Shown here piece by piece: positions 5,463 to 53,348 of a DNA stretch of 64,000 nucleotides (positions within the stretch are counted from its first letter, which is position 1; the number at the start of each line of letters is the position of its first letter). This stretch comes from Girardia tigrina. Taxonomy: Eukaryota. A program made the translations under genes and the position numbers. The notes under the pieces were generated by a model. The model had not been told where the DNA came from. It made no database searches and worked only from the letters and a program-made list of their open reading frames with translations. Where the stretch lies: assembly GCA_001938485.1 (NCBI GenBank), contig MQRK01238503.1:1-64000 (forward strand), read 5' to 3'.

Positions 5463-6400
5463 TGGACAGGAAACCGTGTCTCCACGATTTTTTAGGAAGA
5501 GAGGTGGACAGAGAACGGTAATAAGCGCCTTTCATTTTATGAATTTCCTCTAGCGTCTCATCATCAATCTCCAAAGTCGTCACTGTTTCCTCTACATCAC
5601 TCAAAGTCATATTTAAATGTGAATCAAAAGCATTTAATTTGCCTCGTAATTCTCTATCGTTTTTTATTTTACGTAAATTCGCTCATTTAAGCTCAATCGA
5701 ATCAGATCGAGTGGTTCATCGATTACGGAAATGTCAGAATTTAAAACGTTGCCAGAAATCGGATCCATTTAAATTTCGTTTATCAATTTATATTCTTTAT
5801 TCAAAACTCAAAAAAAAGAACGATTTGCCACTGAAAAATTCAAAACACTTTTATTTTTTAACGACACCTTTTTTGTAACTTTTTTAATAATTGTGATTGC
5901 AAATCACAATTAAAATTAGCACACACACTTTAACACACACATTCACCAATCATTTTAACATACACACACTATACATATCACATATAACTTACCACACGAC
6001 ACACGCAATCATACATAAAGAAAGAAATTACCAGTGATTCATTGGTATGGAAAAATTCATTGTGCTAAGAAATGAGGATCACCATTTAATTAACTCACAT
6101 TACATAATCAATAGAGACATTATTTCACAAATTCCATTATCATTATTGATTTGTTTTAATTTCAAGTATTTCAAACCGATTTATTTATTTTATTAGTTTA
6201 TTTAATTTTGCTTACGTTATTTGAAAATTAATTCCCTTTTTGCATGGTTAATTATGCTAGTGAATATAATTTAATAACATTTTTTTTATTTAACGTTTTG
6301 TCTTTCCTATTTTCACTTTATTTTTATTTAATCCATTATATTTTTTTATTTATAAATTTCTGGCAAAAATGTTCGGTCAAATTGGCAATTATCCGCTCCA
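5463..6400 (-). mobile_element. Cargo-carrying TGGA...TCCA element, copy A (938 bp)
   Basis: TSD CTAAT at 5458-5462 and 6401-6405; first 40 nt are 36/40 and last 35 nt are 32/35 identical to the ends of 52254-53348; shared CA-rich arm. Confidence 0.9.
5536..5768 (-). pseudogene. LSM3: Intronless, 3'-truncated LSm3 (U6 snRNP Sm-like protein) fragment inside element copy A
   Basis: [34 protein letters not shown] / [44 protein letters not shown]; one A missing in a homopolymer near 5667-5670; Sm2 C-terminus absent; missed by the ORF track. Confidence 0.92.
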
Positions 6401-6797
6401 CTAATAGAATTGTCATTGCAACAATTATTCAAACTACTCTCACGATTCGACATTTTTCTTGATTAATATATTTCTGACATACTAATTCTTTTGAAAACAA
6501 ATGAAAATATTATTATAATATTAATTAATTATCAAAATCTTATTGGTTAAAATTAGATCTATATATTTTTTCAATTCCATTAAAATTTTATATTACAATA
6601 AAATAGTAAATATTATATTAAAAAATTACATTTGAAAAATATTTTAAAAATTTTTACTTTAAATTTAAATTAAATTATATTCAATTAGTAATAGTCAAAA
6701 AAATACCAATCAATCATCTGGGTAGGAGAGACACAATCCGAATGAACATGCAACATGCAAAATATAAAACAACAAACAATTCAGAACATTCCTCACA
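6401..6797 (-). repeat. TGTGAGGAA-family repeat, copy 2 (continues left of 5463, interrupted by copy A)
   Basis: CATCTGGGTAGGAGAGACACA...TTCCTCACA end; the short MSN-type ORF starting at 6453 resumes in frame on the far side of the insert. Confidence 0.75.
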
Positions 6798-9140
6798 TAT
6801 TTAAAATAATATTTCAAAATCATTTTTCGAAAAATATGATAAGATGATCAGATAACTAATTATATTGTAAATACAAAAACTTGTAAATCATAAAAAAATT
6901 ATATCCATTCTTTTTTCTGGCAGAACCCTATTTGTTATCTTTTGTAGAAGGGCAAATTACTATAACATTTATTAATATTAATTATTACTTTTTTATTTTT
7001 CTGTGTAATATAAACTACTTATAATTTTTAAGTGATCATTTTTTACTAATATTTTTCAGGAACATCGAATTTTTCGTTTTTTTCAATTTTGGGACCCTAA
7101 AAAGTTTTTTTGATCAAATTTTCACATTATCCTTTATTGCAATCGAAAATGAGTAAGTGTGTAAAGTTTGAAGAAAATTTGAGTAAAAAGCCTTCAAAAA
7201 TAGGTATCTAAATTCCATGGATACAAAAATTTGTTTCAGTTTATAAAGAATAAAAAATTACTTTTCTAAATAACAGATTTAAGTTTGAAAAGGAAAGAAT
7301 TTATATATTTTGTCTTCTTATATTGATAGAACGAGGAATTTTGTGTATCAGACGACTTTGTAATCAAAATTTTTGTGTTTGTCTGAATCATCTATCGCAC
7401 ACAGAAATATAAAGTAGCAAGCGTTGGACTAAATAACATGACTAAACAACACAGGAAGCTCATAAAAATCTAGCTTATCTATCTCTCTCGAATGGTGTAC
7501 CTATTTCTTTGACAAAAACCCTGGTATTTTCGCTTCTAATAAAAAAACTGAGTTGTTTAAATAAATTAAAATTAAAATTATTAAACGTGGGAAATTCAAA
7601 TGTGGTGAAAATGTCGATGAAAATAAATTCTTCCGATTTCTTACTTTTTTAATTTTTATAAATTGTAATCGAATGAAATCGAGCGGACCAGAGCTACCAC
7701 CGCATTGTTCAGCAAATGGGCATTCGGACAACCCACTTGGACGCGTCGAGTGGACCACCGACCAATGCGACGCCGCCGACAGGACCTACACATTTTGGCG
7801 AGCCGCTGTGGGTCGTTTGCGGCGCCGACGCGCGCCTGCGTATTGACCGTTGGTCACTGGAACCGACCGATCATGTCCGCCAGTGACAATTTCCCGCACA
7901 ATTAAGAGGTGCTGGTTGCCGCCACTCGGTTCGGCAGTCAGTACCAAAAATAAAAACGAGTAAAGTAAATACAAAATAACACAATTATTTGAAATTTAGT
8001 TTCAAAAAGGTTAATTTATAGTTGGTTTAAAAAAACCTTTCAAAATAAAATTTTAAGCGGTAAAGATTAAAGGAAATAACAAAATATATTTAAAAAGAAA
8101 AAATTTCAGTTAATTAAAATCATTTTTCAAAGTAGAAAATCAAATAATAATTTTTAAATTGTTTATGGTTTTGATTTCGATTAAATTCAAAATGGAAAAA
8201 ATAATTATCGTTTAATTCTTTTTCTCTATGTTTTTCAGATACACATAGACTGTAATGAAAAACGGATGAGACCCAGTGATTAATTTATGGGAGATTGGGT
8301 ATCCATGATATAAACGTGCGATTAATTAAGTCTAATGTACCTTGACAAATGAATCTAGTCTGCCATCCACTTAAGCGTATGGTCTAACAATTGCTGATTC
8401 TTTCCTCCAACCGAAGATGACACGCACTAACTCATTATTTCAAAGAAATTCCATTGAGAAAATTTTATACAATTATTTCTCGGAAAACTCTAAATTAACA
8501 GAATTTGTACATAAGTTACGTGTTTTTGTTGCTCTTCAATATCAGAAATGAGAACACATAAATGACTGGCAAATGATTGACTGAAATCGTTTTTTTTTCT
8601 GTATTCAAAAATATTTTAAATTTTTATTTAATTGGATAATTTGATTTGATTTTGTAAATTAATTACATATACTTTAATTTACGAATTATTATTTTTGGGG
8701 TTTCTTTTAAAATATTATAATAAAAATATTATAATTAATAAATAATAAAATACATTAATTTTTTGAAAACACAAAACATGCTTTTCATAATTTATGGTTA
8801 TTAATTTCGATGGATCGACCGTTATCATCAGACTAAAGTTTACATTAACATTTCTTTGGTTTATAAACCAATCGCATTTATAAACCTAAGAAATGTGTAT
8901 GTGATCATTATGTATTTTTTATCAATAAAATACTTTTTAAAAAGTTGAAGACGATGCTGTTTGCAAATTGATTTTATAATCAAAATAGAAAAAGACCAGT
9001 CATGTATGACGGAAGAGCTGAATTTTCTTCTTTGAAAGTTTATGTTTTAATTTTAAAATCATAATTATGATTTCTATTTAAATTCTAAAATATTTGAATT
9101 TGTGTTTCACTCACAATTTTGAATAATTCATATAAATCAT

Positions 9141-9340
9141 TAGGGTGAACCAAAAGTTCTTTCGAATATTTTATGTCATTCTAAAATAAATATATTTCAT
9201 ATGCATGTGTTTGATATTATTTTAAAAGTCTGCAATCATTCTATTATATTATTCATATATAATGCAGTTCCACAGACACTGTATATTTTTGGCTTGTAAT
9301 TTCATATCAATGGAGTTATTATGCATTGATTAAAAAATTA
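9141..9340 (+). mobile_element. mariner left-end remnant
   Basis: TAGGGTGAACCAAAAGT matches the reverse complement of the TIR at ~37484-37502. Confidence 0.5.
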
Positions 9341-9415
9341 AAAAATTAAGCCATGCAAAAGCAAAAAAAATTTGAACACAGCAAACTTTGAGCGTTACGC
9401 AGATGAAACTCTGGG

Positions 9416-9454
<39 letters not shown>

Positions 9455-10789: not shown

Positions 10790-11746
10790 GATGCATTAAT
10801 ATAATGACCGGATAATATAATACAATTAGAAGAAATTTCGAAACAGAAGATGAAGTACTAGTCAAGGTGGAAACGGGGATAAAGTAAAGATAAATATGAA
10901 GGACCGTATAAAGTCATAGAGAAAACACATGACAGAAGATATAAACTAATAAATGAAGATGGAAGAATTTTAGATCGAAACTTGCAAAATTTGAGAAAAT
11001 TCTTAAAGAAAGGGGATATGAGGGTTAGTTTAAATTTGCATTTCGCAAAAATAGTTTATTATTTTTTAATTTGCAAATTTAAAAAAAGAAAATTAAACTG
11101 TAAAGTAAAGATATCACAAAAAATAAATACTTATTTAAAATATGCTTGCAGTAATAACAATTGATATATTTTAATAAAAGTTATGAAATAAGTTTAAATA
11201 AATTTTAAAATAGATAACTAACGGATTGATATTTTAGGAAATAATTTTTTAATAAAAGGCTTATAGTAAATTTGAATTGATAAGTTTTATGATAAAATTT
11301 TGTAAAAATGTAAAAATTATTTTAAAATTTAAAATTTAGCAAATGTTCAAAATTTAATCGAAAAAATTTAATAGAATAATTTTGGGTGAGATAATTGAAT
11401 TAACAAGAAATTTGTTTAAATATGTGAATTGTTGATATTAATCCCAATGGGACCGAAACTATTTCCTTTAGAAAAAATGAATTTTTGATATTAATTCTGG
11501 TTTATTATATCTAATGGTTTATTATATCCAATATCTGTATCTGATGAGTTCAAACTCATGACTCATATATACAAAGATTATTGCACCTAATGCCGCCTGT
11601 TGCTGAGTCGTCAAATTGATGTAAAAAATATTTGAGCAGTGTTCTTTTAAAAGGACGGTGGCCCCATTCGGGTTAATAAAGATTGTGCAGTTAAATTATG
11701 AATTCTGAATTTGATAATAATGAAAGTGACATAAATGCTACTTACA
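10790..11746 (+). mobile_element. Ty3/Gypsy 3' end: integrase C-terminus, PPT and 3' LTR
   Basis: KYEGPYKVIEKTHDRRYKLINEDGRILDRN; PPT AAAGAAAGGGGA at 11005-11016; LTR 11017-11746 (TATGAGGG...ACTTACA). Confidence 0.85.
11442..11672. mobile_element. piggyBac-like MITE inserted in the LTR
   Basis: TTAA at 11438-11441 and 11673-11676; ends TCCCAATGGG / CCCATTCGGG; the homologous solo LTR has a single TTAA (empty site). Confidence 0.85.
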
Positions 11747-11952
11747 TCTTTTATTTATAACCAATCTGACATAGTGTTTATGAGGTAACTTGGAGCAATA
11801 TTTGAATGATGTAGAGTGGTGGTTGAATGATTTTTAAATTATATTCGAGATTGGTTGGTTTTTGAAGCATGATCTGTCTCCCTAGACAATTGAAGTCAAT
11901 TATTGAAGAATTTAAAAATGTCTACAAATTGTGTAATAAATTATTTGTTATT

Positions 11953-12445
11953 TGTGAGGAATGTTTTGAATTGTGTGTTGATATTGTGCATGTAGAATGT
12001 TGATTCGGATTGTGCCTCTCCTACACAGATGGATGATTGATATTTTCTTTGATTCTTACTAATTAAAAATAATTTAATTTAATTTTAAAGTAAAAAGATT
12101 TAAAATAATTTTTGAATGTATTATTTATTTTTTTAAAGTAATTTAATTTTAACCAATTAGATTCTTTATAATTTAATAATTTTTATTAACAGATTTTCAT
12201 TTATTGAAAATAATTAGTTTGAACTCAGAAAAAAATGATCAAGAGAGATGTCAAATAGTGAATGCGCTTGTAATATTAATAAATGTTGTAAACCTCATAT
12301 TGATGTTGTTAATATTATTGAACAATTAACAAAAAATACCATTGTTTTAATCATTGTAAATTTTAGGAAATGTTTTGTAAATTCAACAGAAGTCATGGCG
12401 CTGATTACCGATCATTTTACTGTCATTGAATGCTACTTGGGGTAA
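11953..12445 (+). repeat. TGTGAGGAA-family repeat, copy 3, with short ORF 12248-12445
   Basis: TGTGAGGAATGTTTT...CTCCTACACAGATGG; ORF begins MSNSECACNINKCCKPHIDVVN. Confidence 0.7.
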
Positions 12446-14779: not shown

Positions 14780-15280
14780 ATTTCTTAATTTAGTTTTCCT
14801 TCTATGTTATACTTTGTATTTTTCGTCGTAAATGGTTTCGTAGTATTAAGAACACCAATTTGACTTTTTATATTTTTATTTAAACAACAATTTTGATTGT
14901 CCTTAAGACAGTCTTTGTCAAAACTTTCGTACATTTGCATTCAAAGCGAAATTGATTAATGAATTAATTCTTATTATTTTTTAGCAAATGGGGAAATAAA
15001 TATTTTAATAAAATATTCACTCAAAACTTATTGGATAATAATTAAAATGATAATTAATTATTTAAAAATTATTAATTTGATTTATTTATTAAATATTATA
15101 AAAATTAATTAACTTATTTAAAATTTTAAAATTATTTGAAATTAAAAATAAATTTAAACATTACATTTTTAGATAATAAGAATTAAAATATTAATCATCC
15201 ATCTGGGTAGGAGAGACACATTTCCAAATCAACATACACATTCAAACACAAAACATCAAACATCCAAAATATTCCTCACA
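14780..15280 (-). repeat. TGTGAGGAA-family repeat, copy 4
   Basis: CCATCTGGGTAGGAGAGACACA...TTCCTCACA ending at 15280; degenerate ORF start MQMYESFDKDCLKDN...IGVLN. Confidence 0.7.
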
Positions 15281-16380: not shown

Positions 16381-16382
16381 TA

Positions 16383-16516: not shown

Positions 16517-17881
16517 TCCCGCCCTACCAAAAGTCTTCGATCTGTAGCTGTTTCATACTTTTAACTTGTCGCAATGAATTCTATAACATTTAAACACAAA
16601 TATAATGCAGAAAACAGGTGAGGCAATGGAAAAATTAGTATTAAGTACAGTTTCCCTTAGGTCTTATGACTACTCTTACTCGGTTTGGCATAGAATCAAC
16701 CAATTTTTTCAGGAGCTGAGGAGGAATATTTGCCCATTCTTCCAGCAGCTGAAGTTCTAATTTAGTGGCATTCCGAGGAAGCACTTGCCTTTTTACGAAC
16801 GCGTTGGTCTACCTCATCCCAAAGGAATTCGATTTGGGTCAAATTGGGGCTTTATGGCATCCATTCCAGTACATTTATGCCACTTGTTTCGAAGAAATCC
16901 TTAATGAGGTGCGACGTATGGATTGGTCCCATATCGTGTTGGAAGATCATATCGGCAATTTTTGGGAGGAATGGTATCAGTTCATGTTCAAGTATTGCTC
17001 GGTACTCCATGGAGTTCATGTTGTTAGCACACTTTACCAATACACTTTACCTTTGACTGTTAAGTAACTCCAAAACATTGTGGAGCCGCTGTTGTACTTG
17101 ACTGTTGGAAGAACACAATCAGGATGGAATCGTTTATCACTGTGCCGCCATGCAAATTGTCGTCCATTGGAATGGAAGAGCATAAAACGGGACTCATCGC
17201 TCCATATAATTTTCTGCCAATTAGTAGGAGTCCAGATACGTCTGGTATTGTACCAACGAAGACGCCGCATGCTTCGAAGACGAATAGCTTCTAAAATAAA
17301 GGGTTTTCTTACATATACTCTCCAGTAGAAACCTAAGGAATGTAGATTTCAGCGAAATGCAGACATACTTACCTGTGTGTGGCCAGCGTTTTACTCAGCA
17401 GTGATCTACGCCAAGGGCATGCACTGGTTCGGCATCACAAGTCGAAAAACATTTCGGTCGGCCAGATCGCTTCTTGTTCCCATGACTGTAGATTCTGCGA
17501 TACTTTCGGAGAAATGAATCGATTTTTTTATTTGGGGTGACCAGTTAGCTGTGCAATTTCACTCTGAAATTTGTTGCACAGATGACAGCTATATATGGCA
17601 CCCTTCTCAAAGTCTGTGAGCTCCTTTCGTAATGCCATGCTTAACAATATAGTGAATAATAGTGAAATAGAAAAACGCTTCATGCAATATCATTTCTAAG
17701 AAATCTATTTATAGACAATCAATTTGAAGGCCAGTAACAATATAAATTTTATCATTTCAATATACTGATAGTATAACAGCATTATAATTCTTTCATTTTA
17801 GATGACTTTCTCAATAAACTCATAATACCAACAGAAAAGATTCGAATAAGCTTCTGACCGAAGACTTCTGGTAGGACAGGG
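16517..17881 (-). mobile_element. Full-length, decayed Tc1-family transposon
   Basis: Imperfect ~30-bp TIRs (CCTACCARAAGTCTTCG), TA on both flanks; transposase pieces WQKIIWSDESRF, PTVKY, IFQHDMGPIHTS, VLEWMP. Confidence 0.9.
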
Positions 17882-21034: not shown

Positions 21035-21965
21035 GTGTACTTTCACTTTTATTCAAATGCGCCAACTGTCAGTACAATGGCTGAAGCAAGTGGAAATGTC
21101 GAATTTTCTATTAAAGATAAAGTTTTCATCACTAGTCATGCAATCGTTTATGAAAGCTGCACAAAAGCGTGTCAAATTTTTAAAGAGCNNNNNNNNNNNN
21201 NNNNNNNNNNNNNNNNNNNNNNNNNNNATTGGAAGAAGAAATTCGAAGAAACGGGGAATTTGTCAACAAAACCGCGATCAGGAAGACCATCTGATGAACA
21301 CATGAAGGAAAGTGTTGTTCAGTATGTGAAAGAAAACGATACTGCAAATCAACGACGGGTTGTACGTGTCCTTGGTACTTCGCAGAGTTCTGTTCATCGT
21401 TACCTCAAGCAAGAAAAGGTAAAGCCTTTCAAGTTTTCTTTTCAACAAGAGTTAACAAAAGATGACTCAGATCGAAGAATTGAATTTTGTTCTTGGATAA
21501 TCAACGAAAATGGCACCAATTTTTACAGAAGAATTATTTTTTCTGATGAGGCATCGTTTTACCTTAATGGCCATATGCGAAGGCATAATCTTTTTTATTA
21601 TTCTGAAGAGAATGAAGATCGTTTGATTCGTGTGCCTATGAAATCGCCGGAATTAACTGTTTGGGCAGCTGTTTCCTTCGACCTTGGAATAACTTTCAGT
21701 ATTATCCGTGAAACAATGAACCAGGTACGATATGTCGACGTTCTGAATCAAAAGTTGCTGCTTTACTATAAAAATTCATTGCTGAAGTGTTAATTGTCGT
21801 GCCATGCCAATATTGCCAACAATAATGAACAAAATGAAATAATTTAAAAAATTTTTAAATAAATAATTATTAAAACAAAAAATTTTATCTGGTTTTTGTT
21901 TATAAGTCCTTTAGAATTTTGTGTTTATTATTATTAAAACTGGGTAAAGCGACTTATGGCCACCC

Positions 21966-24695: not shown

Positions 24696-25490
24696 TTAGC
24701 CGTTGGGCCATGGGTGAACCCAATTATAAACAAGCCTTCGCCACATCTCTCTATTTATAGCTTCTTTTCTCAGACATTCAATACTCAATCCATTCCATTC
24801 TTTTAAATCGTCTATCCAATGCCTCTTTGGTATTCCTCTTCGTCTTCCTTCCACTCTTCCCTCAATCATAACCTTTGCTAGTGCTTGTTTTCTTATTTGA
24901 TGTCCGTAGAATTTTAGCTTCCTTCTCTTAATGGTCTCTTCTATTGATTCCGGTCTTTTACCTAGTATTTCTGTCACTCTCCTCCAGACAAAGTCGTTTG
25001 TCTTCTTTTCTTTCCACGTGATCTTCAGCATTCTCCTGTAGCACTTCATTTCAAATGCTTTAAGTCTATCCATGCTCTTCTGATTTATTGTTCAACTCTC
25101 GTAACCATATATGAGTGTTGTCAAGACAATAGCCTTATTGATCCTTATACTGCTCTTGAGATGTATTTCTTTGAGGTTGAACACTGTGCTAAGCTTAATC
25201 ATTGCGCTTGTTGCAATACCAATCCGGCTTCTGATTTCTTCTTCGCGTTCCCCGTTTTCTGTAATAGTAGAGCCTACGTATTGGAAACTCTTAATTTGTT
25301 CCAGCTTCTCCCCTTCAATGTCGATCTCCAGTTTAATATCGTTGTTATGGTTTCCTGAAACCATTATTTTACTTTTTGTCTGTTGATTTCCATTCTAAAT
25401 TTCTTTGATGGTTTGTGTAATCTATTCGTGAGTTCCTGAATCTCTGTCTCATCTTTACCGATTAGGTCTATGTCATCAGCAAAATTATAT
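24696..25490 (-). mobile_element. RTE-like LINE, 5'-truncated RT 3' end
   Basis: FADDIDL, FQYVGSTI, LIYGYES, FEMKCYRRMLKITW, GRRRGIPKRHW. Confidence 0.9.
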
Positions 25491-25499
25491 CACGATCTC

Positions 25500-25950
25500 A
25501 TAAAATTCAAAATATGTTCAGTAATAAATCTATTACACCTTTAACACTTTGTTCTGAAATTTTTTATGAATATAAATGTAATGGTTATGATGTAACATAT
25601 ACTGGAGAGACTGCTCGTGATCTCTGTACATAAATTAAAGAACATGGTCAAAAGAAGAGTAAAAGCACAACATAAGAAAAAATTTAAATGTGATATTAAT
25701 ATTGATAATTTCAAGATTCTATGTAAGCATTTTGATAGTTATTGAGAGAGTGTCGTGTGAAGCTTCGCTAATTAGGTCACGTTGCCCTAAATTAAATGTT
25801 AACCGGCAGTCTCAACCAGCTTATTGAGAATTTTCGATAAACGTGATTTCATACAATCAATTACATAATCATTATTGTTACATTTATATACTGGTGAATT
25901 AAATTATTAATCAGCGACCTGAAGATGATCAGTCGAAATATATCGTCATT
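25500..25950 (+). mobile_element. Penelope 3' end: GIY-YIG remnant and hammerhead-like motif
   Basis: FYEYKCNGYDVTYTGETARDLCT*IKEH; GAC-CTGAAGA...GAAATATATC-GTC at 25916-25947. Confidence 0.75.
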
Positions 25951-26281
25951 AAATATGTTTTAGTGGATAAATTTTGTTTTTCATAAAAAATTGTCATCCG
26001 AATTGCAGCTTATCTATAAAAGTATTATTTTTCATTTAGCGTTTAACTTAAGATGACCAGATTTTTAGACGGGCAAAGCGGTACAAGTTTGAAGGACGGG
26101 GTATCGAAAAAACTTTTTATACATAATAAAAATAATATCGTAATATTTTTTCTATTATTAACATAAGTAAAATTTATAAATATAAAAAATCTAACAACGC
26201 AACCGCTTACCGATATCCCGATTGCAGCTACCAAATGTGGTTAATATACTGCCGAGGTAACAGAACTCGCTCACCCATTCT

Positions 26282-26670
26282 ATGACTTTGTCACCACACA
26301 TCACTTACGATATTCCAGTCCCCGATTCATCAGTTAGGTACATGACTTTCGTCTTAGATGCACTAATATTCAACCCAAATTCTGAAAATGTGCTTCTAAC
26401 TATATCCAGGTTTTTACAGGCACGATCAATATCAGTGTCGGTGATACATAAATCATCCGCATAAGCAAGTCTACTGACTTGAAATTTGTCACCATGCTCG
26501 TCGATCAGAGTAATTTTTCCCCTGAATCCTTTCAGTACCGCCGTTTTGATAACTTCATCGAAGACCAAGTTAAAAAGACAAGGTCACATCACACATCTCT
26601 GTCTGACACCTCTTTCCAACATAATAACAAAGTTGTCTCTAAATGAAGTTACACCAATTTCAAATTAAAG
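26282..26670 (-). mobile_element. LINE reverse transcriptase fragment
   Basis: GVRQRCVM*PCLFNLVFD...LAYADDL...FGLNISASKTKVM. Confidence 0.85.
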
Positions 26671-27092: not shown

Positions 27093-28428
27093 CGAGGGGC
27101 GTTCCGAAAGTAAGTGGAAAAAAGGGAGACTACACCACAAGAAACCATTTATTGAAGGAATACAATGCCATTCATCATCCTCATCACTGTCAAACTTTTC
27201 AAGATACTCACCAGAAATGCGAATGCACTTATTCCAACGCTTCACTAATGCCTTCATGTCACTGTCAAAGAATTCCTTTGGGGTATGCTGCATCCAATTG
27301 CGAACAGCCACTTTCATTTCTTCAACATCTGCGAAGTGTTTTCCACGGAGTGGTCTCTTTAACTCTCGGAACAGGTGGAAGTCGTTGGGAGCGAGATCAG
27401 GAGAGTAAGGGGGATGTGGCAAAAGTGTCCAACCCATCTGCTCCAGAGTGTTCAACGTCAGGTGGGCAATGTGTGGACGGGCATTGTCCTGTTGAATTAG
27501 AGGCTTGAGAGATAAGTTTCCTGGACGTTTGTTTTTCACCGCCCTTCGAAGATCAATCGACAAGAGATTGCTATAGTACTGGCTGTTTATAGTTACACCC
27601 TTCTGGAGATAATCTATTAGCACTATGCCTTCACAGTTACAAAAGACTGTAATCATGACCTTCCCGGCAAATGGAACTGTCTTTGCCTTCAATGGTGGTT
27701 TCTCTCCAGTTTAGCACCACTGTTTCGATTGCACCTTGGTCTCTGGTAAGTAGAAAGGAAGCCAAGTCTCATCCATAGTGATGATTCGCTTCCGGAACGA
27801 TTCACCAAGGTCCTCGCACATTTTCAGTAGCTGGCTGTATATAGTCACGAGGTTTCCTTTTTGCTCCACATTGAGAAGACTTGGCACCCATCTGGCTGTC
27901 AGCTTGCTCATATTCAGGTGCTGCGTAACAATTGCATGTACACGTGTTGCAGATAGACCTGTCATCTCCGCTAACTCGCGAATGGTAAGGCAGCGATTTG
28001 CATTGATGGTCTCCGACACTTTTTCCGCATTTTCTACCGTGCTCGTCGTTGCTGGACGTCCACTCCTGTCCTCGTCGTCCAAGGATTCACGTCCATTTTC
28101 GAATTGATGCACCAAATTGTAGACGGCAGACTTTGCAGGGCTCTTTCTTGAAACATATTTGATAAGCGGTGCATAATGTCAGCCACTTGAGTATCTTCTT
28201 TCCAAAGGAAAAAGATGATGGCACGCTGAGAACGTACTGCGTCTTCCATGTGTTAAACAAAAATGAAAACACTGCCTATGACAGTTTCCTCTATGCTGCT
28301 CACATGTTGCATGGACCAATGCCACTTTTGCTCGATTTCTATTGGCTGGTAAGTACATCACGCCATCTGTCTCTCTGTAAGATGCACACATGCACCCGTA
28401 TTTCCACTTACTTTCGGAACGCCCCTCG
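27093..28428 (-). mobile_element. Full-length mariner (irritans-like), transposase disrupted
   Basis: Perfect 28-bp TIRs CGAGGGGCGTTCCGAAAGTAAGTGGAAA, TA TSDs; ARWVP, TMDETW, QDNARPH, PPYSPDLAPND. Confidence 0.95.
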
Positions 28429-36405: not shown

Positions 36406-37502
36406 ATGGAAAATTTTGAAATTCCTGTTCTTTTACGCCATTACTGGAAACAGGGCTTAAACGCAACTGCAGCAACAAAGAAGATATGAGAAGTTTAAAG
36501 TGATAATGTGGTCTCAAATCGTACTACACACAATTGGTTCAAAAGGTTCAATGTAGGCGACATTGACCTCGGAGACAGTGCACGTTCAGGCCGACCTATC
36601 ACCGTAGATTCCGGAGCAATTCGTGAAGCCGTCGAGACAAATCCGTCAATAAGTACTCGCAGATTGTCGGCCGAACTCGATATTCTTCAAACATCCATTG
36701 TATGACACCTTCATGCTCTTGGCAGGGTCAATAGACGACGTCGAGAAGTGCCTCATGAATTGACACAAATTCAAGCCGAAAAGCGTTTCGAAACTTGTCG
36801 AAAATTGCTTGAAAATCCGCGCGATGACTGTTTCATCCGTCGAATTGTAACTTGCAATGACAAGTAGGTTTACTTCAGTAATCCAGACCAACAAAATCAA
36901 TGGTTGGACACCGGAAAAATATCTAAACCGGTATCGAAACGAGATCGTTTCTCAAGGAAGGTACTTTTGTGTGTTCGGTGGAATTTCGAAGGCGTGATCT
37001 ACTTCGAGCTGGTTCCAAATGGTCGTACCATCGACGCTGACCTTTACAGCGCCCAACTTGATCGAATGTATGCGGCACTTGGCCAGAAATACCCCGCTTT
37101 GATCAATCGAAAGGGAGTTCTACAACAGGTCAATGCAAAACCGCACACCGCCAAACAAACAAAGGAAAAAATCAAAAATCTTGACGCCTTTGAACTTCTT
37201 CCACACCCAGCGTATAGTCAGGATCTTCCGCCATCCGACTATCACCTTTTCTGCTCTATGATACACTTTCTTCGTGGTCGCAGCTTCAATAATCTGGCCG
37301 AGGTCGAAAACGGGTGTCACCAGTTCTTCGCTTCTAAGAACAAGGATTGGTACCGCAGCGGGATCGCACAACTTGCCCATAGATGGGTTCAAGCTATAGA
37401 TTCAAATGGCCTTTACTTTGAAGCTTAAATGTTTTTTATTTGTTGTAAAATTATGTTGAAATTTTTAATAAAAAATACGAGAAGACTTTTGGTTCACCCT
37501 AA
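36406..37502 (+). mobile_element. mariner transposon, transposase with stops and frameshifts
   Basis: WFKRF...RSGRP, VPHELT, HPAYSQDLPPSDYHLF, GLYFE; right TIR at ~37482-37502. Confidence 0.9.
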
Positions 37503-39643: not shown

Positions 39644-42600
39644 TCATATAAAAAAGTTAAAAACCTTGCCTTTACTTTCCATGGTGTTCGCAAATGATTT
39701 TGGTGTATACAGACAACAATTTTTATTTTTCTTGAATTTAACTGAATTTAATTTATTTAATTTTTGAATAATTATTTGGTCAATGAATTGGTCAATGATT
39801 GTCATTATATATTTTTGTCTTCCAAATGATGTATTAAAAGGTTCACAAAAATCAATATGAATTTTTTCAAATAATGAAGTTGGTTTACTTTTAACTACTT
39901 TTTCTTTCGTTTTAATCGTCAACACTTTTCTCTTCTGGCAATTTTCACAACTCTGCACAATTTCTTTAATTTTTTCTTTTCTATTTGTCATATCGAATTT
40001 TCGAGATATGTATTCGTGAACTTTCTTAACTCCCGCGTGGCATAGCAGCTCGTGAATATGGGTTATAATTTGTCTTGTATTTTCTTCAGGAATCCAAATT
40101 TTATCTTTTTGTGTATAAACAATGTTGTTCAATATTTTCCACTTTGTTTCCTTATTATTTTCAATCTCGTTCTTTATATCGCTTATTTCTATTGACATTG
40201 AGCGTAAGTTATACAATCTGTTCTTGATAGTGCATCGGCATTAGAGTGTTCTTCCCCTTTTCTATACTCCATCTGGATATCTAAGCTACTCAAATGATTA
40301 ATCCATGTCTGAAATTGAGGAGTTATGGGTTTCTTTGTTTTCAGCATAAACGTTATGGCTTTGTGATCAGTACGGAGTTTGAAGCGTTTTCCGTACAAAT
40401 AGTGCTTAAAATGTTAGGTAAAATAAAATATAGCTAATAATTCTTTTCTTGTTATGTAATAACCAAGCTCATGCTTATTCATGGCTCGTGATCCATAAGC
40501 TATTGGCTTTTCTCGTCCATTTTCGTCCAATTGTGATAAAACCGCTCTGATTCGGTCAAAACTTGCATCAGTATCCAAGATAAATTCATTTGAAAAATCT
40601 GGAAATGCTAAAACTGGAGCTTTTGTAAGTTCTTTTTTCAAATTTTGAAACGCCTCCTCGCAGTCGTTTGTCCAACAAATTTTATTTTGTGTGCTGCCGC
40701 ATACCGATTCTAGAACTTTCGAATATTTCGTATAATCCTTTATAAATCTTCGATAGTAATTGGTGAGTCCATGGAAACTTCTTAGTTTTTTTAACACATT
40801 TGGGACTTTCGAATTTTTCAATAGCTTCAATTTTTGATTTCTCAGTTTGAATTCCATTTGTATTAATTTGATGACCTAAAAATCTAATTTCTTCTTTCAA
40901 AAAGTGACATTTACTAAGGTTTATTTTCATACCAGCTTCCTTTATCTTTTTAAAAACATTTTCAATTCTTTTATAGTGTTCTTTCAATGAGTTGGAGAAT
41001 ATCAGCATATCATCTAAATAAAACACAGCTTCTTTCCAATTGAGTGGTCCTAGAACTTTATTCATTAATTTTTGAAATGTGACGGGTGCAGCAGCTATAC
41101 CGAACGGCATTTGATTAAAACAATATTGGGAAGATTTAGTTGAAAAAGCTGTTTTTAACTTCGAATCATCACTGAGCTCCACTTGGTAAAATGCGTTACC
41201 AAGATCAATAGTACTAAAATACTTTCCTCCATATAAAATATCCATCATTTCTGTAGTATTAGGAATAGGAAAAATTGGTCGTTCAGTGACTCCATTTAAA
41301 GCTCTATAATACAAACAAATTCTTATATCTTCACTATCTCTTTTCTTTACACACACTAATGGCGAATTCCAAGGTGATTCACATTTACTTATAATACCAT
41401 TGTCTTCCATTTCTTTAATGCTTTTATCAATTCTTTCGATTAAATGATATGGTCGACGCCGAGGATTCATTACGATTGGTTTGCTATTAGTCACTATCTC
41501 ATGTTTTAATAAATTAGTTTTCCCGATATCCCATTTGTGTTTCATTATAATATTTTCATATGTTTTTAATATTNNNNNNNNNNNNNNNNNNNNNNNNNNN
41601 NNNNNNNNNNNNNNNNNNNNNNNNNNNNNNNNNNNNNNNNNNNNNNNNNNNNNNNNNNNNNNNNNNNNNNNNNNNNNNNNNNNNNNNNNNNNNNNNNNNN
41701 NNNNNNNNNNNNNNNNNNNNNNNNNNNNNNNNNNATGCTATATAAAATTCTATTTTTTTCTTAATATTATTTAATTCGACATCCAAATAAACTCTTCCTA
41801 CTATTTCTAAATTACTATCGTTAGCGCATCTTACTTTGGCAAATGATTTATTACACTCAAACTTCCCTATTTTGTTTAACAATTCTTCTTTAATAACACT
41901 TATTCTTGCTCCTGTATCAAGTAGGTACTTATTGTGGATTCCATTGACTTTAATATTGACAATTGGTCTGCCATCGAATTTATCATAATCAATTATTTCA
42001 TTTTTATTATTGAGTCTATTAATNNNNNNNNNNNNNNNNNNNNNNNNNNNNNNNNNNNNNNNNNNNNNNNNNNNNNNNNNNNNNNNNNNNNNNNNNNNNN
42101 NNNNNNNNNNNNNNNNNNNNNNNNTCATCATACAATTTGCAAACATACGTATTATCATTAGATAAATCATTTTCATGAAAATTATCAATATTTAAATTTT
42201 TATAATTATTATTCGAATTATACACGTGAGAATTACTATCAGAAATATTGGTAATTAACACATCATACTTTTTCTCATCATACAAATCATCATCATACAA
42301 TTTATCAGTCATATCGGCTTTATTCAATATACAACTTACATGATTCAGTGAATCGCCCCGATAACCTCCTCTCGTGGCAGGGCTTTGGCATTTGGGTGTT
42401 TGTCAACCATCTCGGACGAGTCCAGCTCCGAATCTTCGTATTCCACTTGATCATCGAATGCAGCGACTTTATATCTCTGGTATGAATCCTTCCTCCTAGA
42501 CTCGTAGCATTGGTGACGAAAATGTCCGGGCTTCTTGCAATGAGAACATTGAACGTGTGGGCATTGACTTCGAACATGGCCTTTTTCTCTACATGCCCAG

Positions 42601-43370
42601 CATGTTTTTATTCGATGGGACAATTCTCTTCCATGATATGCTTCTTTATTACTATAATTTTGACCCCTTCTGTTAAAATATTGTGTTTGTTTCAGCTTTT
42701 GTGTTTCTCTTCTTTCGCCATTATAGTATATATTTTCCTTGAATCTGATTGGTTGATTATTATATCTTTGATTTGTTTGGACGGCTCTTGCGTAACTTGG
42801 TTTATCCGTTTTTAAAACGGCAACGTTATTTTCTGCTTGTAGTTCCTTTTTTATTAATTCCATTTTTGTTATAATTTGCTTTATTTCTTCATTGCTGGTT
42901 GCGCTTCTCATTTTTATTTCTTTTTTAATGTCCATATCATCTATGGAGTTTTGCAACAGAAATGTGACAAGCGTTTCTTTCGTCAACGTATGACGCAATA
43001 TGTTGTCGGCTAAAATATCAATTTTTTTAAAAAATTGTGCTACCGTTTCTTCTCCTTTTCGATATTTCAAAGCAGCATATAAATCTTTACTGATGTCTGC
43101 TGGTTCTTGAAAAGCTTTTCTAAATCTTTCTTTATAATCTTCAACGGAATCTTCGATTGCTTCATATAGTTTAGCTGCATCAGCTGATAAAAATGCCCTG
43201 ATGAATGTTTTCTGCAGTGGGCCTTGAATTCCAGTCAATTCGTATAATCGTTGAATTTCTTCTAAAAATTCTTCTATATTATCTCCGACATTGAATATTT
43301 TGGGAGTGGGGACAAAAGAATTTAAGTGTCCTGGCGTGGTCGCCATGTTAGAAGACTTCAAGACTGTCAT
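39644..43370 (-). mobile_element. Ty3/Gypsy retrotransposon internal region (gag-PR-RT-RH-partial IN), decayed
   Basis: gag with two CCHC knuckles; LLDTGA protease; YLDD RT; DTDAS RNase H; H-H-C-C integrase zinc finger; frameshifts and stops in pol. Confidence 0.95.
42345..43370 (-). CDS. gag: Gypsy Gag, open 341-aa ORF
   Basis: CWACREKGHVRSQC and CSHCKKPGHFRHQC knuckles. Confidence 0.85.
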   Translation of the reverse strand: MTVLKSSNMATTPGHLNSFVPTPKIFNVGDNIEEFLEEIQRLYELTGIQGPLQKTFIRAFLSADAAKLYEAIEDSVEDYKERFRKAFQEPADISKDLYAALKYRKGEETVAQFFKKIDILADNILRHTLTKETLVTFLLQNSIDDMDIKKEIKMRSATSNEEIKQIITKMELIKKELQAENNVAVLKTDKPSYARAVQTNQRYNNQPIRFKENIYYNGERRETQKLKQTQYFNRRGQNYSNKEAYHGRELSHRIKTCWACREKGHVRSQCPHVQCSHCKKPGHFRHQCYESRRKDSYQRYKVAAFDDQVEYEDSELDSSEMVDKHPNAKALPREEVIGAIH

Positions 43371-43609
43371 AATATTTATTTAAAAGACAATAAGATGAGG
43401 AATATCATCTGTATATATATTGATTAATGCCGTCATCAATCTGGGTCAAACATATACTCATTCATTTCACCATACACACAATTTCGGTCGTGACCTCTTA
43501 CACAACAATACAAAGATCACACCTCAAACATTCCATACATAAATTACGCAGCATACGTTTATTAGTTTCGATAATAATTCTCATCACAGTACAACTTGTC
43601 ATAGCGGGG

Positions 43610-45665: not shown

Positions 45666-47374
45666 CTTTTTGGAAACAAAAATTAATTCTTTTTATTATT
45701 TATTGGTTGGGGTACTGTTCCATTCTTAGCCCCAACAAGAAAAATATTTTTTCAAATTTATTTCTTTGCCAGTATTTTTAAAATGATTTATCTTTAATTT
45801 TCATTAAAATAAATTTTATTGAAAAACATTTTTTTTAAAATATTTTTATCCTAAAAAATAATGTTATGATCAGAGTAATACGTGGTGTGCCGATAGAGTA
45901 AGTTTCATCTGAATCCCATAGAGCTAATGTTGTGTTACACACAGACGACTAAGAAACGCGACTTATTGACGCTTTGATATATTTTTATTTTGTGAAAACT
46001 TTCAAAAAAATTATTCTAATTCATTATAATGACCGAAAATCAAAATTTGTAAATAATAATTCTTTTATTTATTAAAATTATTTTAAAACAATATTTTGAT
46101 GATGTGTTCCGATTACGCATACATAGAACTTAATAGATACAACAAGAATTATTACACTTTTAGTTGAAAATATTTGTTCGGTTTCGTTTTTGAATAAAAT
46201 TTTCGATAAAATATTTTTTCTTTAAATGTTAGTTATAAAAGTAAGAAAAAATTTTATTAACGTCAAAGTAAAAAAAATTAACGATATATATANNNNNNNN
46301 NNNNNNNNNNNNNNNNNNNNNNNNNNNNNNNNNNNNNNNNNNNNNNNNNNNNNNNNNNNNNNNNNNNNNNNNNNNNNNNNNNNNNNNNNNNNNNNATATA
46401 TATATATATATATATATATATTCGTTAAAAGTTATGTTTTTGTTTTAACGAAAAACGGTAACTCCGTAATTGGGTGTTGTAATGTTATAATAATAAATTC
46501 TGCTATCAAAGAAATATTGATTTATTATCAAGAAAATTATTCATGACATTTGACTATATTTTTAATGCGGATTATCTTGTAAAGACATTTGAAGATAATC
46601 TTGTAATAATTCCCAATCAGAGATTGCATATCAAAATTTGTGAAGACATTCATGATAAATCGTATGAATTAATGAGAATATTTCAAAGTTGTAGAAACAG
46701 TATGGAAACGATGTTTTGGAAAATAATCACCAACAAACACGGTGTCAAACCGACCACTGGTGTTCACGAAAGCGACAGTGATTTGCAATTACAGAGAATT
46801 GACGTTTACTTTACTTGGTTGAATTGAATAGTGCCACTCTCGATTACGCTCTGAATTCGAATCTTGGTGAATTGTTTCAACCAGATTATTTCATCTGTGG
46901 TTCCTCAAGTGATTCCAACAAGTGCGAAAGAAAGACCAAGTATTCAGATATTCCCAAGTCGGTCGGCGCTTTCGGACGATTAATGAACGTATGTCCTTGT
47001 GTAATTATTATATTTATTTATATAAAAATGAATAATAATAATAATAATAAAAATAATAAAAATATTAACAAAAATAAAAACAATAAAGATAGAAATTTTA
47101 GCAAAAATATAGATGATAATAATAATAATAATAAATTAGACAACGATGCAATCGAACTCACTCATCTCCCTTGATGACCCGCTGGGGGTCAAGATATGAT
47201 AAGTGCTTCCACTGCGCTGCTGCCACAACAATATTTTTAGAAAACTTAGAATATGATTTATGTAATTTTAATTATTGTATTTTTAGTTTTTTTGATTTCA
47301 GTTAATTAAAAATCTGATTGTTAAAATTTTTTAAAAACAAAAAGCTTATTTGTATCTAAAGGTAAAATTATAAT

Positions 47375-47965
47375 TGTGAGGAATATTTTAAATTTGGTAT
47401 GTTGAAATTGGTTTGTTGAATTTTCTATGTTGTGTTTAGTATTTGGAAATGTGTTTCTCCCACCCAGATGGAAAATTGATATTTTGGGTGTTCACGATAA
47501 TTAATTATTCGAGTATAATTTGAATTTTAAAGTACAGCATAAGATATTTAAAAAACTTTAAAAATATTAAATCGTTTCAAATTTTAATATTAAAAATTTA
47601 AATAAAGTAAATAACTTTTAACTAAGTTTTAAATTAAATAAATGTTCTTTCTTTACATAAAATCATTTTTTAAATAAAATTAATATGTAAATAAAATAAA
47701 TAATAAAATTACAAAATTTGAACTTTATAAATAAAATCTGAAAATAATGAAAATTTGTTCGAATAATTGTTTATTAACAAACATTAATAAAAAATTATCA
47801 ATTTAGAACGATGTCGAATGACGAGAGTTTTGCTGAGAATTGTCCAAAAGACAATTCTGACTGTATTGAAAATAAAAGTTCGGAAACCCATGTTGGTGTT
47901 CTTAATAATAATGAAATAGAAAAATCCGAAAATTTTCAAAAAATTAAAATAATAATAAATTAAAC
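47375..47965 (+). repeat. TGTGAGGAA-family repeat, copy 5, with short ORF at 47811
   Basis: Aligns to 155-447 (reverse complement); ORF MSNDESFAENCPKDNSDCIENKSSETHVGVLN. Confidence 0.75.
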
Positions 47966-48879: not shown

Positions 48880-50735
48880 AAAAAATTATTCATTTTCAGG
48901 AGTGACTTTCCACTCTTCCACGATTTGCGCGTGTTAAAAAACAACTCTTTCGTAGTTTAGGTGTAGAAAGGGCGCTTCAGATACCGGCTTTCTTCATAAT
49001 CATTAGACACAAATTAATTCAATCAAAAACATTCGCATCGTGCATTATAGTTTGAGATTTTATCGTTATCCCGTATGTAGTCCTTCGATTTTCCTTGAAT
49101 AATCGAACCATTCGAATTGTACAAATTTCAGTAGTGTAAGTAACATTCATTTTTTTACTATTTTACTTTAAAAAAATATTGTTTCATCTCATAGGAAGAT
49201 TTGAGGCAAGATTTATGGTTGCTGTTGTTAGGAGTTAATGTTTTTGAATAATTTGGTACTTCCGAATTAATTTCATCCAACAGATCCAATTCGCCATCCA
49301 GTGACTGATCGAAATATTCCAAATCGTTTACTTCTGCTCATCACTTGTTATGGAATTCGTGTCTTCATTTTCTTCAATTTAGAATTCTGAGATTGTTTAC
49401 GTAATTCATCAAGGAATAGTTCTATTTTCTTCGAATTCAAAAGTAATTTATTATTGGTGGCAACCCCATTGCAACTGTTGGCCACAGGGGATATTGGTGG
49501 TTTGGAATGTGAAGCATTTGGTAAAGACTTTTTATTTATTTAAATCTTGCTTACTGGTAATCGATATTCCTCGAATTCTTTACACAAAATCGATTTTATT
49601 TCTCTTTGGTGTTTATTTGCACTATTAATCGATCGATTCGCGCCAGATGACACTCGAAATTCTTTGAAATTCCAAACCGTGTTATTATTATTATTGTTAG
49701 GGTTTCGAAAAATACATATGAACACTTTTGATAAAATTTTATGTAAGAAAAATTTTCAAATAATTCTTTTAGTAAAATTATTAATTTCAAATAAAATAAT
49801 ATTTAGTTTAACAAAATTTGGAATCTAAAATTAAAAATATTTTAGTCTTTGTTTTACTTTGTCAATTTTCAAGGCTGATGAAAATTACTATATAAACAGC
49901 AGCAAATTTAGTCTAGTTTGCCCAAAAAATTCTCTCATCAAAAAACAAAAGGAAGCAAGTAAACTCATAGAATTATTTTTGTTATGTATTAATCTTTTTA
50001 AAATATTATTCTTTTTAAACCATAAGTATCCCGTATGGGAGAAGAAGGTTTAATTTAATTTTAAACATTCGTTCGTTTTGGAGATTCACAGTTTTTGCTG
50101 TAATCTGTTAACTCGTACGAAATAAGGTTTTGTGTTTGGTGTTCTGTCATCAAGAATTGAATTATTATTATTATTTTTGAATTTTTAATTTTTGTTATTT
50201 GAAATAAAGTTTCATAAAAGAATTTGTGTTCATTGTCTATATATTTATGTTGGAAGTCTTTTCTGATTAATTGGAGTCAGATTTAAAATTAAAGATTTCA
50301 GATTAAAGATTAAAGAATAAAGATTGGTGTTTTAAAAAGTAAATAATTATATTAAATATTTCTAATACCCAACATTATTATTATTCGAATCAATTTTTGT
50401 CGGAAAGAAACTGTTTTGTTTGTCTTTCGCGATTAATCGATTCTGAGTCATATCGATTGACAAAAAGAGGCGCTGGTTCTTATGGCAGTTGCAATTGTTA
50501 TTCCACTGCAGACAATAGTTCATCGGTGTTCCTATGGCGATTTGAGGCAATCGCAATTATCGGGTTGATTATCGATCGATTTACAATCGACATTCGTGTT
50601 GTCGTTGGTTCTGTTGGAAATTGTCTCGAGCGACCTTTCCAGTTGAAATCGGAATGGTATATCGAGTGATTGCGACAGGCGCTTCATTTGATCGAGAGAA
50701 TGTTTTCGACTGAAATCGGTATTTATAAATGACAT
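48880..50735 (-). pseudogene. Putative multi-exon gene or pseudogene of unknown product with tiny introns
   Basis: Coding-like blocks separated by candidate GT-AG introns 49528-49554 (27 nt) and 49372-49400 (29 nt); a stop or frameshift follows. Confidence 0.35.
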
Positions 50736-51335
50736 CACTGGTTTTTTTATTGTAAGATTTTTACGAATTTTTATTTTGTTTTGAAGTGGAAATATAGCGG
50801 TTGGTTTGGTTTTTATTTTGAAAAAAATAAAATTTATGATTTTGAATATTACAAAGTTGAAATTTCGCAAAATCTCACTGATAGTTTAAGCTGACAAAAG
50901 ACGATTTTTAATTAATTGTATTTTTTTATTTGAAATTGAAAAAAATGTGACAATAGTCACGTACATAACCTTGATTACATTGATTCATTAAAACAAATTT
51001 TATTTTTTATAATAATTTTCTCGAAATTGTTTTTTTAACATTGTGACAAAAATTTTTCATAGAAATTTTTTCAACACACACATACAATTATAACTAATTA
51101 TATTCACACATACATATTAAATAATTGGTTGGTTCACATTAACAAAGAAAAATCAATACAAATTCAAATCTGATCGATGATTTCATTGTTCGATGTGTGA
51201 TTTGATTTTTCGAAAACAATATTTTTGCGAATGGAGAAATTTTGAATTAATTTACTTGTCGTGATATTTGTACGAAAACGGCGTAATGATATTTGACATT
51301 CGAAAAGAAATAATTGATATCTTCGAAAACAGAAA

Positions 51336-51377
<42 letters not shown>

Positions 51378-52253
51378 TTTTTCTTTTAACTTTACTCTAA
51401 TTATTTAATAATATTTTTTTACTTTACTTTAATCACTTTGGAATTATTTATTTAATTATTAATTTGATTTTACTTTTAATTATTTTTTAATTAATTATTT
51501 TATTTAATTTATTTATTTAATTCACTTTAAATTTATCATTTTTATTTATTCTTTTACTTATTTAATTTAATTTTACTTAATTTTATTTATTTAATGTTTT
51601 AATTTAAATTGGGCTCAAGTAAGGGTCAAAAATAATCGCAACGCGATCAATTATTAATTAACTAATTTATTCGAAACACATATTCCTCTAAAAAAACTTA
51701 CTCAGGAATGCCTAAATTAGTTGGACAAAAATTCTTTTTGATAAATTAAATAGAAGTGCCAATTAAATCCATAAATCTTAAATTATCATTCAATCAGAAA
51801 AACGAAAATGCATTTTTTTAAATAACAAATAAAGAAAAAAGGCTCATTCAAAATGCGGAAGAGTACCTGACGAACGAAAGAGCAGCGAAGAATTCGATTT
51901 TCACACAAATCACCTTTTTGATTTCTGACACCTGAGAACCGTGATCGAGCAAACTACACCGTAGTTGCATCACATCGAAACACATATTAATATCAGAATC
52001 GATTAAATTGTTTAAAATTGTGAATTTAAAATCGAATTTTGGTGATTTCTTTTTCGCTTAAATTAATATTGAAAAAAAAGAAAATTTTAATTTGCTAGTT
52101 TTTTTGAAAAAAATAATTGATAAAGAAATTTAGATAACTAAAAGATATTTGATTTTAAATTTTAACGTCCAAGTTAATCAGATATCAAAAGTAGCTTCAT
52201 ATTATTATTGTAGTAGTTCTAGTTAAAATGACTAAAAAATTTATCTTTATTAG

Positions 52254-53348
52254 TGGACAGGAAGCCGTGTCTCCGCGATATTTTAGAAAGAGAAGAATTG
52301 TTTCTCATTGTGCACGTCGGTTGAAAAGTGCTTTTCATTTTATTGAACAAAATATTCAGCGGAATCCCATCTCGTTTACGCAATTAAAATATGGCGATAT
52401 CCCAACCGAGAAAATGATGACATGCATCTTTATCATAGATCAACCGCACAATAAACGGGTGATTAATCGCCACCAAAATGTTGCGCTCCATTTGTGTTCG
52501 CAATCGATCCCTCAATTTTAATGAAGCTTTCCGCAACACTTTAATCGCATAAAGATTTCCGGAATGAATACCTTTGGTTTTTCGAACTAAATAAACCTGG
52601 CCGAATGATCCTTGACCTAAAATTCTCAATAACTGAAATTGTGACGGATCAACTTTTTCATTTTGATTCACTAATTCCGTCACATTGACCTCAGTAATCA
52701 ACTCATGATTGTCAAAATTAAAAACAAAATCCATTTAAATCGACANTGTTTCAAGTTTTCAAAAACTTATTTTTTAAATTGAATTAAGAGAACTCCTTTT
52801 TTTATTTAAAAGAAATTGGAAATTGAAATTGACAAATTCTCTTTTTTTAACGTTTTTTAACATTGAATTTAAAAATTGATTTAAATTTCACCGTTTTTGA
52901 AAATTGATTTAAAAAAATTGTGATCATTATTCACAAATAAATTTAACACATACACAACATACACACCTTCAGCCAATCCCAATCATTTACATTTCATTAA
53001 ACACAAACATACACACAAAACACGCAATCACATTCACACAAACAAAGACATACTTACATGCAAAGATTCATTTAATTACATAAATTAACAATGAGGCTCA
53101 CCACTTAGTTATACAATTATTTCCTCGAATTAATAGATCGATGAATATCGAATCGGAATCGGTGTCTGTTTTCTGTCGACAATTCACTCATTTCTTTTTT
53201 AATATATTTCATTTTAATTTAATTTGTTTTTTATTTATTTTACTTTTAACTTAATTAATTATTTAATTTATTAGGTTAATTATATTTTTTATTTATATTT
53301 TCCGGAAACTAGCAAAATGTTCGGTCAAATCAGCAATTCTCCGCTCCA
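52254..53348 (-). mobile_element. Cargo-carrying TGGA...TCCA element, copy B (1095 bp)
   Basis: TSD ATTAG at 52249-52253 and 53349-53353; termini and arms homologous to 5463-6400. Confidence 0.9.
52434..52734 (-). pseudogene. Intronless fragment of the p90 ribosomal S6 kinase (RSK) N-terminal kinase N-lobe inside element copy B
   Basis: [27 protein letters not shown]...[40 protein letters not shown], then unrelated sequence. Confidence 0.93.

Follow-up and report, generated by a model that had tools for sequence, protein, structure and literature searches.

We analyzed a 64,000-nucleotide stretch of Girardia tigrina DNA (hereafter the window; GenBank assembly GCA_001938485.1, contig MQRK01238503.1, positions 1 to 64,000 of the forward strand) and found two insertions of about 1 kb (copy 1 and copy 2; Table 1) that share their ends and arms and carry, in one fixed slot and on the same strand, coding fragments of two unrelated host genes: LSm3 in copy 1 and RSK (ribosomal S6 kinase alpha) in copy 2. 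Both fragments end exactly where relatives of these genes have exon borders, and the RSK fragment lacks two introns that relatives possess. We give an about even chance to the reading that the two units are solo long terminal repeats (LTRs) from a single LTR-retrotransposon family, each belonging to a different, diverged sub-line, with host sequence captured at the RNA level into an ancestral LTR and solo-LTR formation following later.

The plus strand of both units starts with TGGACAGGAA and ends with ..TCCGCTCCA, and their TGGAC.. and ..CTCCA termini make a short imperfect inverted match, with ~8 mirrored positions among the outermost 11 nt. Each unit is bordered by a perfect 5-bp target-site duplication (TSD), for which the chance probability is ~0.002 per copy. 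A preliminary description of this DNA had given the same coordinates, ends and TSDs, all of which were as stated on re-inspection, and its view that the units are insertions with integrase-type ends is supported by the TG..CA termini together with the 5-bp TSDs. The marks of a solo LTR, TG..CA ends and a TSD within 4-6 bp, were found in both units. The sequences flanking copy 1 and copy 2 are unrelated, and the pair is therefore not a segmental duplication. Five assembly gaps occur between the copies (21-46 kb), and none in or near either one, so that the finding is independent of continuity across the gaps. By "family" we mean n = 2, the window having just these two copies (a near-match at 58243 is without a matching end). 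An exact-pattern scan with both termini returned no further copies in metagenome, viral and prokaryote-genome collections, so that the repeated swapping of cargo and the large genome-wide library first suggested are conjectural. The two TSDs (CTAAT and ATTAG) are mutual reverse complements with a T-W-A core in both (post-hoc chance ~0.002), and this core could possibly indicate a target preference.

A further sign of insertion is that copy 1 interrupts one member of an unclassified dispersed repeat family whose members are 67-71% alike (6440-6820, 11928-12314 on the minus strand, 14998-15280, and 47384-47565 on the minus strand). The member at 11928-12314 is an unsplit paralogue of the repeat that hosts copy 1, to which the flanks of copy 1 are 71-84% identical when the pieces are compared separately. 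The join with this paralogue is not base-exact, and ~35 nt beside copy 1 are without a counterpart there.

The two copies resemble each other in several separate blocks. The first 40 nt on the left are identical at 36 of 40 positions, the last 134 nt on the right are 73% identical (32/35 at the extreme end), and a middle block that includes the hairpin and a CA-rich tract reaches 73% identity (5865-5951 in copy 1, 52889-52978 in copy 2). A 21-nt pattern from the left end matched the window at the two copies only (0 matches expected by chance), and within the window the blocks ACACGCAATC and AATGAGGMTCACCA and the 12-mer ATCCATTTAAAT are likewise confined to the two copies, with order and strand conserved. 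The 12-nt junction block has two occurrences in the window, one in each copy. A T/C-rich stretch follows AATAAA in copy 2 and CATAAA in copy 1. The shared hairpin of the preliminary description is present in both copies, but only copy 1 has a substantial stem (11 bp, z = -2.1); that of copy 2 has just 6 bp and is weak (z = -0.55).

On the minus strand, each unit is laid out as an AT-rich long arm, the ATTTAAATGGAT block, the cargo and the shared tail, and the reading frame of the cargo opens in both copies at the ATG of the ATTTAAATGGAT block. The cargo of copy 1 matches LSm3 (Pfam LSM, E = 1e-09; PDB 3jcr_3, E = 4.5e-17; the two pieces of the frame were searched separately) and is closest to flatworm LSm3, with 76% identity to Macrostomum and 73% to Schistosoma and with lineage-typical residues in common, in keeping with a flatworm host. 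The cargo of copy 2 lies in an open frame of 116 codons, residues 8-100 of which correspond to the start of the RSK N-terminal kinase domain (PDB 6g78_A, E = 3.8e-31); its closest relative is P0001 (metaclust, 146 aa; 86% identical). P0001 has its C-terminus at the same residue as the end of the RSK-cargo homology, and close to a conserved intron position it contains an insert of 31 aa. The LSm3 and RSK matches, both on the minus strand, bear out what was first proposed: the host coding fragments of the two copies are unrelated to each other, yet occupy a common slot and strand.

Full-length relatives of LSm3 and RSK match the window at 5536-5738 and 52435-52713 only, and no remaining exon of either gene was found in the whole 64 kb. 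The cargos are therefore isolated fragments and not true genes, and the alternative that misassembly has broken up the genuine LSm3 and RSK genes here, which the preliminary description had named as a refuting outcome, finds no other exon in the window to stand on. Neither unit contains a transposase or a reverse transcriptase, no noncargo open reading frame (ORF) of either unit matches Pfam, and no Rfam family, including tRNA, spliced-leader (SL) RNA and 5S, was found in the units. The units are non-autonomous, as had been supposed.

The matches of full-length relatives stop exactly at 5536 (LSm3) and 52435 (RSK). The LSm3 homology stops after ..EEIHK, and Schistosoma LSm3 has an intron after the equivalent ..EEVYK; a second Schistosoma LSm3 intron falls within the span that the cargo covers unbroken. 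The RSK homology stops at ..LIY plus one base, and an exon of an annotated flatworm RSK gene (GCA_008508345.1) ends at this point and continues with G|GTGAGT. The same annotated gene has two more introns, after ..GSFGK and ..KASLK, neither of which is in the cargo, and genomic ORFs of other species stop at the same three intron positions. Among the best 150 RSK representatives, ~27 stop at residue 73-79 (residues 69 and 82 account for one further representative each), and almost all others at 100-102 (our own count). P0007, one of two close RSK relatives and the only close one with its exon flanks preserved, has introns directly before the first RSK-homologous residue and after ..GSFGQ, both absent from the cargo. 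A GT donor is missing after both cargos, and AG is missing before the first RSK exon in copy 2. Because the cargos end at intron positions, RSK introns are lost and GT and AG are missing, the evidence speaks for spliced RNA, and not captured genomic DNA, as the probable source of the cargo, as judged against the introns of relatives and not against the parent genes. The RNA origin put forward in the preliminary description is better founded now that the cargo ends fall at conserved intron positions and the RSK cargo is found to be without two introns of its relatives; the coincidence of cargo borders with predicted exon borders is new relative to that description. What the slots hold is in keeping with LTR-mediated retroposition, namely partial, intron-free copies of host mRNA, again by comparison with the genes of relatives.

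A solo LTR is the class that best fits the combination of TG..CA ends, an imperfect inverted match, a 5-bp TSD, conserved ends of 35-40 nt and a variable interior. Of the "solo-LTR/TRIM-like vehicle" first suggested, the solo-LTR part is the better fit; the other part, a terminal-repeat retrotransposon in miniature (TRIM), does not, there being no terminal direct repeats, and a solo LTR is itself no vehicle. Neither terminal direct repeats nor long inverted repeats rose above shuffled controls in either unit. Minus-strand reading of the LTR is suggested by the two cargos, both in sense in that direction, and by the motif resembling a poly(A) signal that precedes the tail. On this strand a TATA-like block is conserved close to the 5′ end, and AATAAA or CATAAA lies 75-85 nt before the 3′ end; such motifs are common at 27% GC.

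Several other identities were considered and do not fit. A TRIM or a large retrotransposon derivative (LARD) is ruled out by the lack of two terminal direct repeats. The AATGAGGMTCACCA 14-mer is ruled out as a primer-binding site (PBS), as the sequence preceding it is not repeated at the end of the unit. A classical DNA transposon with terminal inverted repeats (TIRs) was rejected on the lack of such repeats above shuffled controls; a Pack-type one fits poorly, with no long TIRs and with cargos that have neither GT/AG border signals nor introns at positions conserved in relatives. A processed pseudogene made by a long interspersed nuclear element (LINE) was rejected because the cargos are 5′ fragments within shared arms and have no poly(A) tail. 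Nor does a complete spliced leader precede the ATG, where the copies have just 12-16 nt in common.

Under the favored reading of the units as solo LTRs with RNA-derived cargo, the LTR would run on the minus strand from a conserved 5′ end (TGGAGCGG..) through an AT-rich promoter-like region, the slot and the poly(A)-signal-like motif to a short conserved 3′ end (..CCTGTCCA). In a full-length ancestor, reverse transcriptase would abandon the element RNA immediately upstream of the poly(A)-signal motif, would then copy a co-packaged and already spliced host RNA (maybe an LTR-host or leader-spliced chimera), and would resume on the element RNA at one set position, the ATTTAAATGGAT block. Completion of the cDNA would place the cargo in both LTRs, integration would yield the 5-bp duplication, and later LTR-LTR recombination would leave a solo LTR.

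Parts of this scheme have precedents. The mRNA copies made by LTR-mediated retroposition are partial and show microsimilarity where they join the element, and one family switches back at a fixed site (Tan et al. 2016, PMC5131818). In copy 1, the junction sequences ATGGAT and ATAAA (5-6 nt) could belong to both the element and the LSm3 mRNA, as microsimilarity would demand. Transcripts that start in flatworm solo LTRs are spliced to exons of the host, and the acceptor can be a former leader site (Koziol et al. 2015, PMC4558846), and flatworm spliced leaders end in AUG (PMC7346339, PMC12582326). A leader ending in AUG would explain why the cargo starts at the ATG; yet no full leader is present, and only 12-16 nt are shared.

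A number of points weigh against the favored reading. Macrostomum LSm3 is intronless, and intron loss in LSm3 is hence uncertain; more generally, intron loss was assessed against relatives and not against the parent genes of this genome, so that it may be read only as probable. No full-length element with the ends of the units occurs in the window, and the three retrotransposon bodies present are not bordered by such ends. Adjacency of a PBS or polypurine tract (PPT) is no test for a solo LTR, copy 1 has CATAAA instead of AATAAA, and there are two copies only. Finally, plain template switching at microhomology does not predict exon-exact cargo ends; exon-exact ends go beyond it, and therefore a chimeric spliced RNA template, or a slot defined by splicing, may apply.

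Ends of the TG..CA type and a TSD of 5 bp are compatible with integrase-like DNA transposons as well, and the units might be non-autonomous cut-and-paste DNA elements, mobilized by an integrase-like or DDE transposase, that acquired one genomic exon with bits of intron by Pack-type capture. We consider this improbable. It is compatible with the termini and the TSDs and with the lack of an LTR pair in the unit; the RSK stretch is a single exon in some species (P0003-P0005), LSm3 can be intronless, and the AT-rich 21 nt before and the 95 nt after RSK in copy 2 could be intron remnants. However, the terminal inverted match reaches no more than ~8/11 nt, the RSK block is without AG in front and GT behind, the LSm3 block is without GT behind, introns lie inside the captured span in P0007 and in the annotated flatworm gene, and the window offers no transposase partner. 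It is also rather unlikely that the units are independent, one-off chimeric cDNAs of element and host RNA, each integrated once and alike only through a shared parent retroelement. The small number of copies and arms that are only ~73% alike are what one would see in that case, and such chimeras are known from several animals (PMC5131818); but known chimeras keep both LTRs, whereas the units are without an LTR pair, and the 12-nt junction and the start of the tail, which are the same in the two copies, point to a defined slot or to switching at a fixed site.

The exon-exact ends of the cargos, and in copy 2 an exon-exact start as well, all without GT or AG, would follow if the slot were defined by splicing, i.e., if an element transcript with a donor and an acceptor had host exons cis- or trans-spliced between them before reverse transcription. 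Flatworms do trans-splice, with leaders ending in AUG (PMC7346339, PMC12582326), and flatworm LTR donors can use leader acceptor sites (PMC4558846). We nevertheless assign this a low probability: the copies share 12-16 nt upstream of the ATG and no full leader, there is no cargo-free member to reveal donor and acceptor, copy 2 has no AG before the start of the tail, and no SL RNA family was matched. Similarly doubtful is a bolder proposal, that the LTR of a retroelement in a trans-splicing animal contains a standing, splice-defined cassette slot, in which host exons would be joined between an AUG-ending leader-like donor and an acceptor upstream of the poly(A) signal and fixed as DNA, so that trapped 5′ exons would form a transcribed library across the genome. 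Chance, an assembly artefact, or true LSm3 and RSK genes can hardly account for the data. The scaffold does contain gaps, and copy 2 one N, but the termini have 0 expected occurrences by chance, the motifs are ordered and exclusive to the two copies, both TSDs match perfectly, the copies and their surroundings are free of assembly gaps, and the window has none of the other exons of LSm3 or RSK.

Cassandra TRIMs carry 5S rRNA sequence in their LTRs, as one constant noncoding cargo in a two-LTR structure. The units resemble Cassandra in having cellular gene sequence inside a putative LTR, and differ in their varied protein-coding fragments and in having no LTR pair. Pack-MULEs have long TIRs, 9-bp TSDs and genomic fragments with introns. 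Like Pack-type elements, the units are non-autonomous and hold varied host gene fragments between shared arms; the TIRs, 9-bp TSDs and introns of Pack-MULEs were not found in them. In retroviral transduction, spliced sense host sequence is gained at the RNA stage and replaces viral genes between two LTRs. The sense, apparently spliced cargo of the units is similar, but lies inside what appears to be a single LTR. Retroviral transduction of host genes is also outlined by Tan et al. (2016, PMC5131818), who cite maize Bs1 and yeast Ty1 chimeras and note that chimeras of multiple sources are possible. Like the LTR-retroposition chimeras of that study, the units seem to consist of LTR-retrotransposon sequence into which an incomplete host mRNA copy is set; short similarity at the junctions, typical of those chimeras, has only 5-6-nt candidates in copy 1, and the fixed switch-back site of one of its families offers a further parallel. 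In those chimeras, however, part of the internal region is replaced and both LTRs are kept, whereas each unit is a single block without terminal repeats and with exon-exact borders. The ta-TRIM and lennie solo LTRs of flatworms (PMC4558846) are likewise flanked by TSDs, but there the fusion to host exons exists as RNA only and the TSD is mostly 4 bp, whereas in the units the host exons are within the inserted DNA (compared by description only).

If the favored reading is true, host coding exons ride inside the LTR itself, at a fixed place and with exon-exact borders, and each insertion or solo LTR would spread a 5′ exon that has a start codon and is linked to a promoter. Such exons would be a source for exon shuffling and for antisense or small-RNA templates against the parent genes, and the cargos would be a direct record of the RNAs that enter retroelement particles in a flatworm-like genome, where retroposition is little known.

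Table 1 Features of the two insertion units and of the unsplit repeat paralogue (window coordinates)
Feature	Position	Strand	Remarks
Copy 1, whole unit, 938 nt, TG..CA ends	5463..6400	- (putative functional orientation)	Termini, shared blocks
Copy 1, left TSD, CTAAT	5458..5462	.	Perfect 5 bp
Copy 1, right TSD, CTAAT	6401..6405	.	Perfect 5 bp
Copy 1, long arm, 632 nt, GC 25%	5769..6400	-	Conserved terminus, TATA-like block, conserved blocks
Copy 1, 14-nt block	6071-6084	-	Conserved in copy 2
Copy 1, ACACGCAATC block	6001-6010	-	Conserved in copy 2
Copy 1, hairpin	5888-5912	-	Within long arm
Copy 1, 12-nt junction block, ATTTAAATGGAT on minus strand	5763..5774	-	Contains cargo ATG
Copy 1, cargo, LSm3 coding fragment, one frameshift	5536..5768	-	ATG to residue where relatives have intron
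Copy 1, tail, 73 nt, GC 47%	5463..5535	-	Common to copy 2; after CATAAA; terminates ..TTCCTGTCCA
Copy 2, whole unit, 1095 nt, single N at 52746	52254..53348	-	Termini, shared blocks
Copy 2, left TSD, ATTAG	52249..52253	.	Perfect 5 bp
Copy 2, right TSD, ATTAG	53349..53353	.	Perfect 5 bp
Copy 2, long arm, 614 nt, GC 24%	52735..53348	-	Conserved blocks as in copy 1
Copy 2, counterparts of 14-nt and ACACGCAATC blocks	53090-53103, 53020-53029	-	
Copy 2, hairpin	52918-52936	-	Within long arm
Copy 2, 12-nt junction block	52729..52740	-	
Copy 2, 21 nt from ATG to start of RSK homology, GC 14%	52714..52734	-	Candidates: host N-terminus, intron tail, element
Copy 2, cargo, RSK fragment, open frame	52434..52713	-	Corresponds to three exons of annotated flatworm RSK gene, without introns
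Copy 2, 95 nt between RSK block and tail, GC 35%	52339..52433	-	Ends AATAAA; not in copy 1
Copy 2, tail, 85 nt, GC 42%	52254..52338	-	Common to copy 1; AATAAA directly before; runs to ..TTCCTGTCCA
Unsplit paralogue of repeat hosting copy 1	11928..12314	-	Matches to 5414-5458 and 6440-6820 just 8 nt apart

The window has a GC content of 27% and is rich in transposons of invertebrate type. An LTR-like repeat of ~435 nt, with two copies ~89% alike (3869-4302 on the minus strand and 11022-11442 on the plus strand), is inverted around the region of copy 1 and is unrelated to the cargo-bearing element; its copy at 11022-11442 is preceded by a purine-rich tract and by an ORF that resembles an integrase C-terminus by eye, without a Pfam match. 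A Gypsy-type gag-pol body on the minus strand (39647-43379) comprises a zinc-knuckle gag, reverse transcriptase, RNase H and an integrase zinc domain; it has no detectable LTR pair, and its pol frame has three or more interruptions, besides two assembly gaps. Frames on the minus strand at 24699-26583 resemble, by eye, fragments of non-LTR reverse transcriptase. Remnants of mariner/Tc1-like transposases were recognized by eye at 27093-28178 (minus), 36499-37425 (plus), 21035-21793 (plus) and 16855-17348 (minus); the Pfam scan among them covered 17037-17348 only and gave no match. An inverted repeat pair of ~280 nt, 88-91% alike, lies 47 kb apart (177-456 on the plus strand, 47366-47643 on the minus strand). 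The region at ~59600-62300 on the plus strand is a compositional outlier (49% GC vs. the 27% background) with retroelement-like frames, an aspartyl protease domain (Pfam match), a CCHC-like motif by eye and an assembly gap within it, and a short repeat array with a spacing of 41/57 nt occupies 62349-62601.

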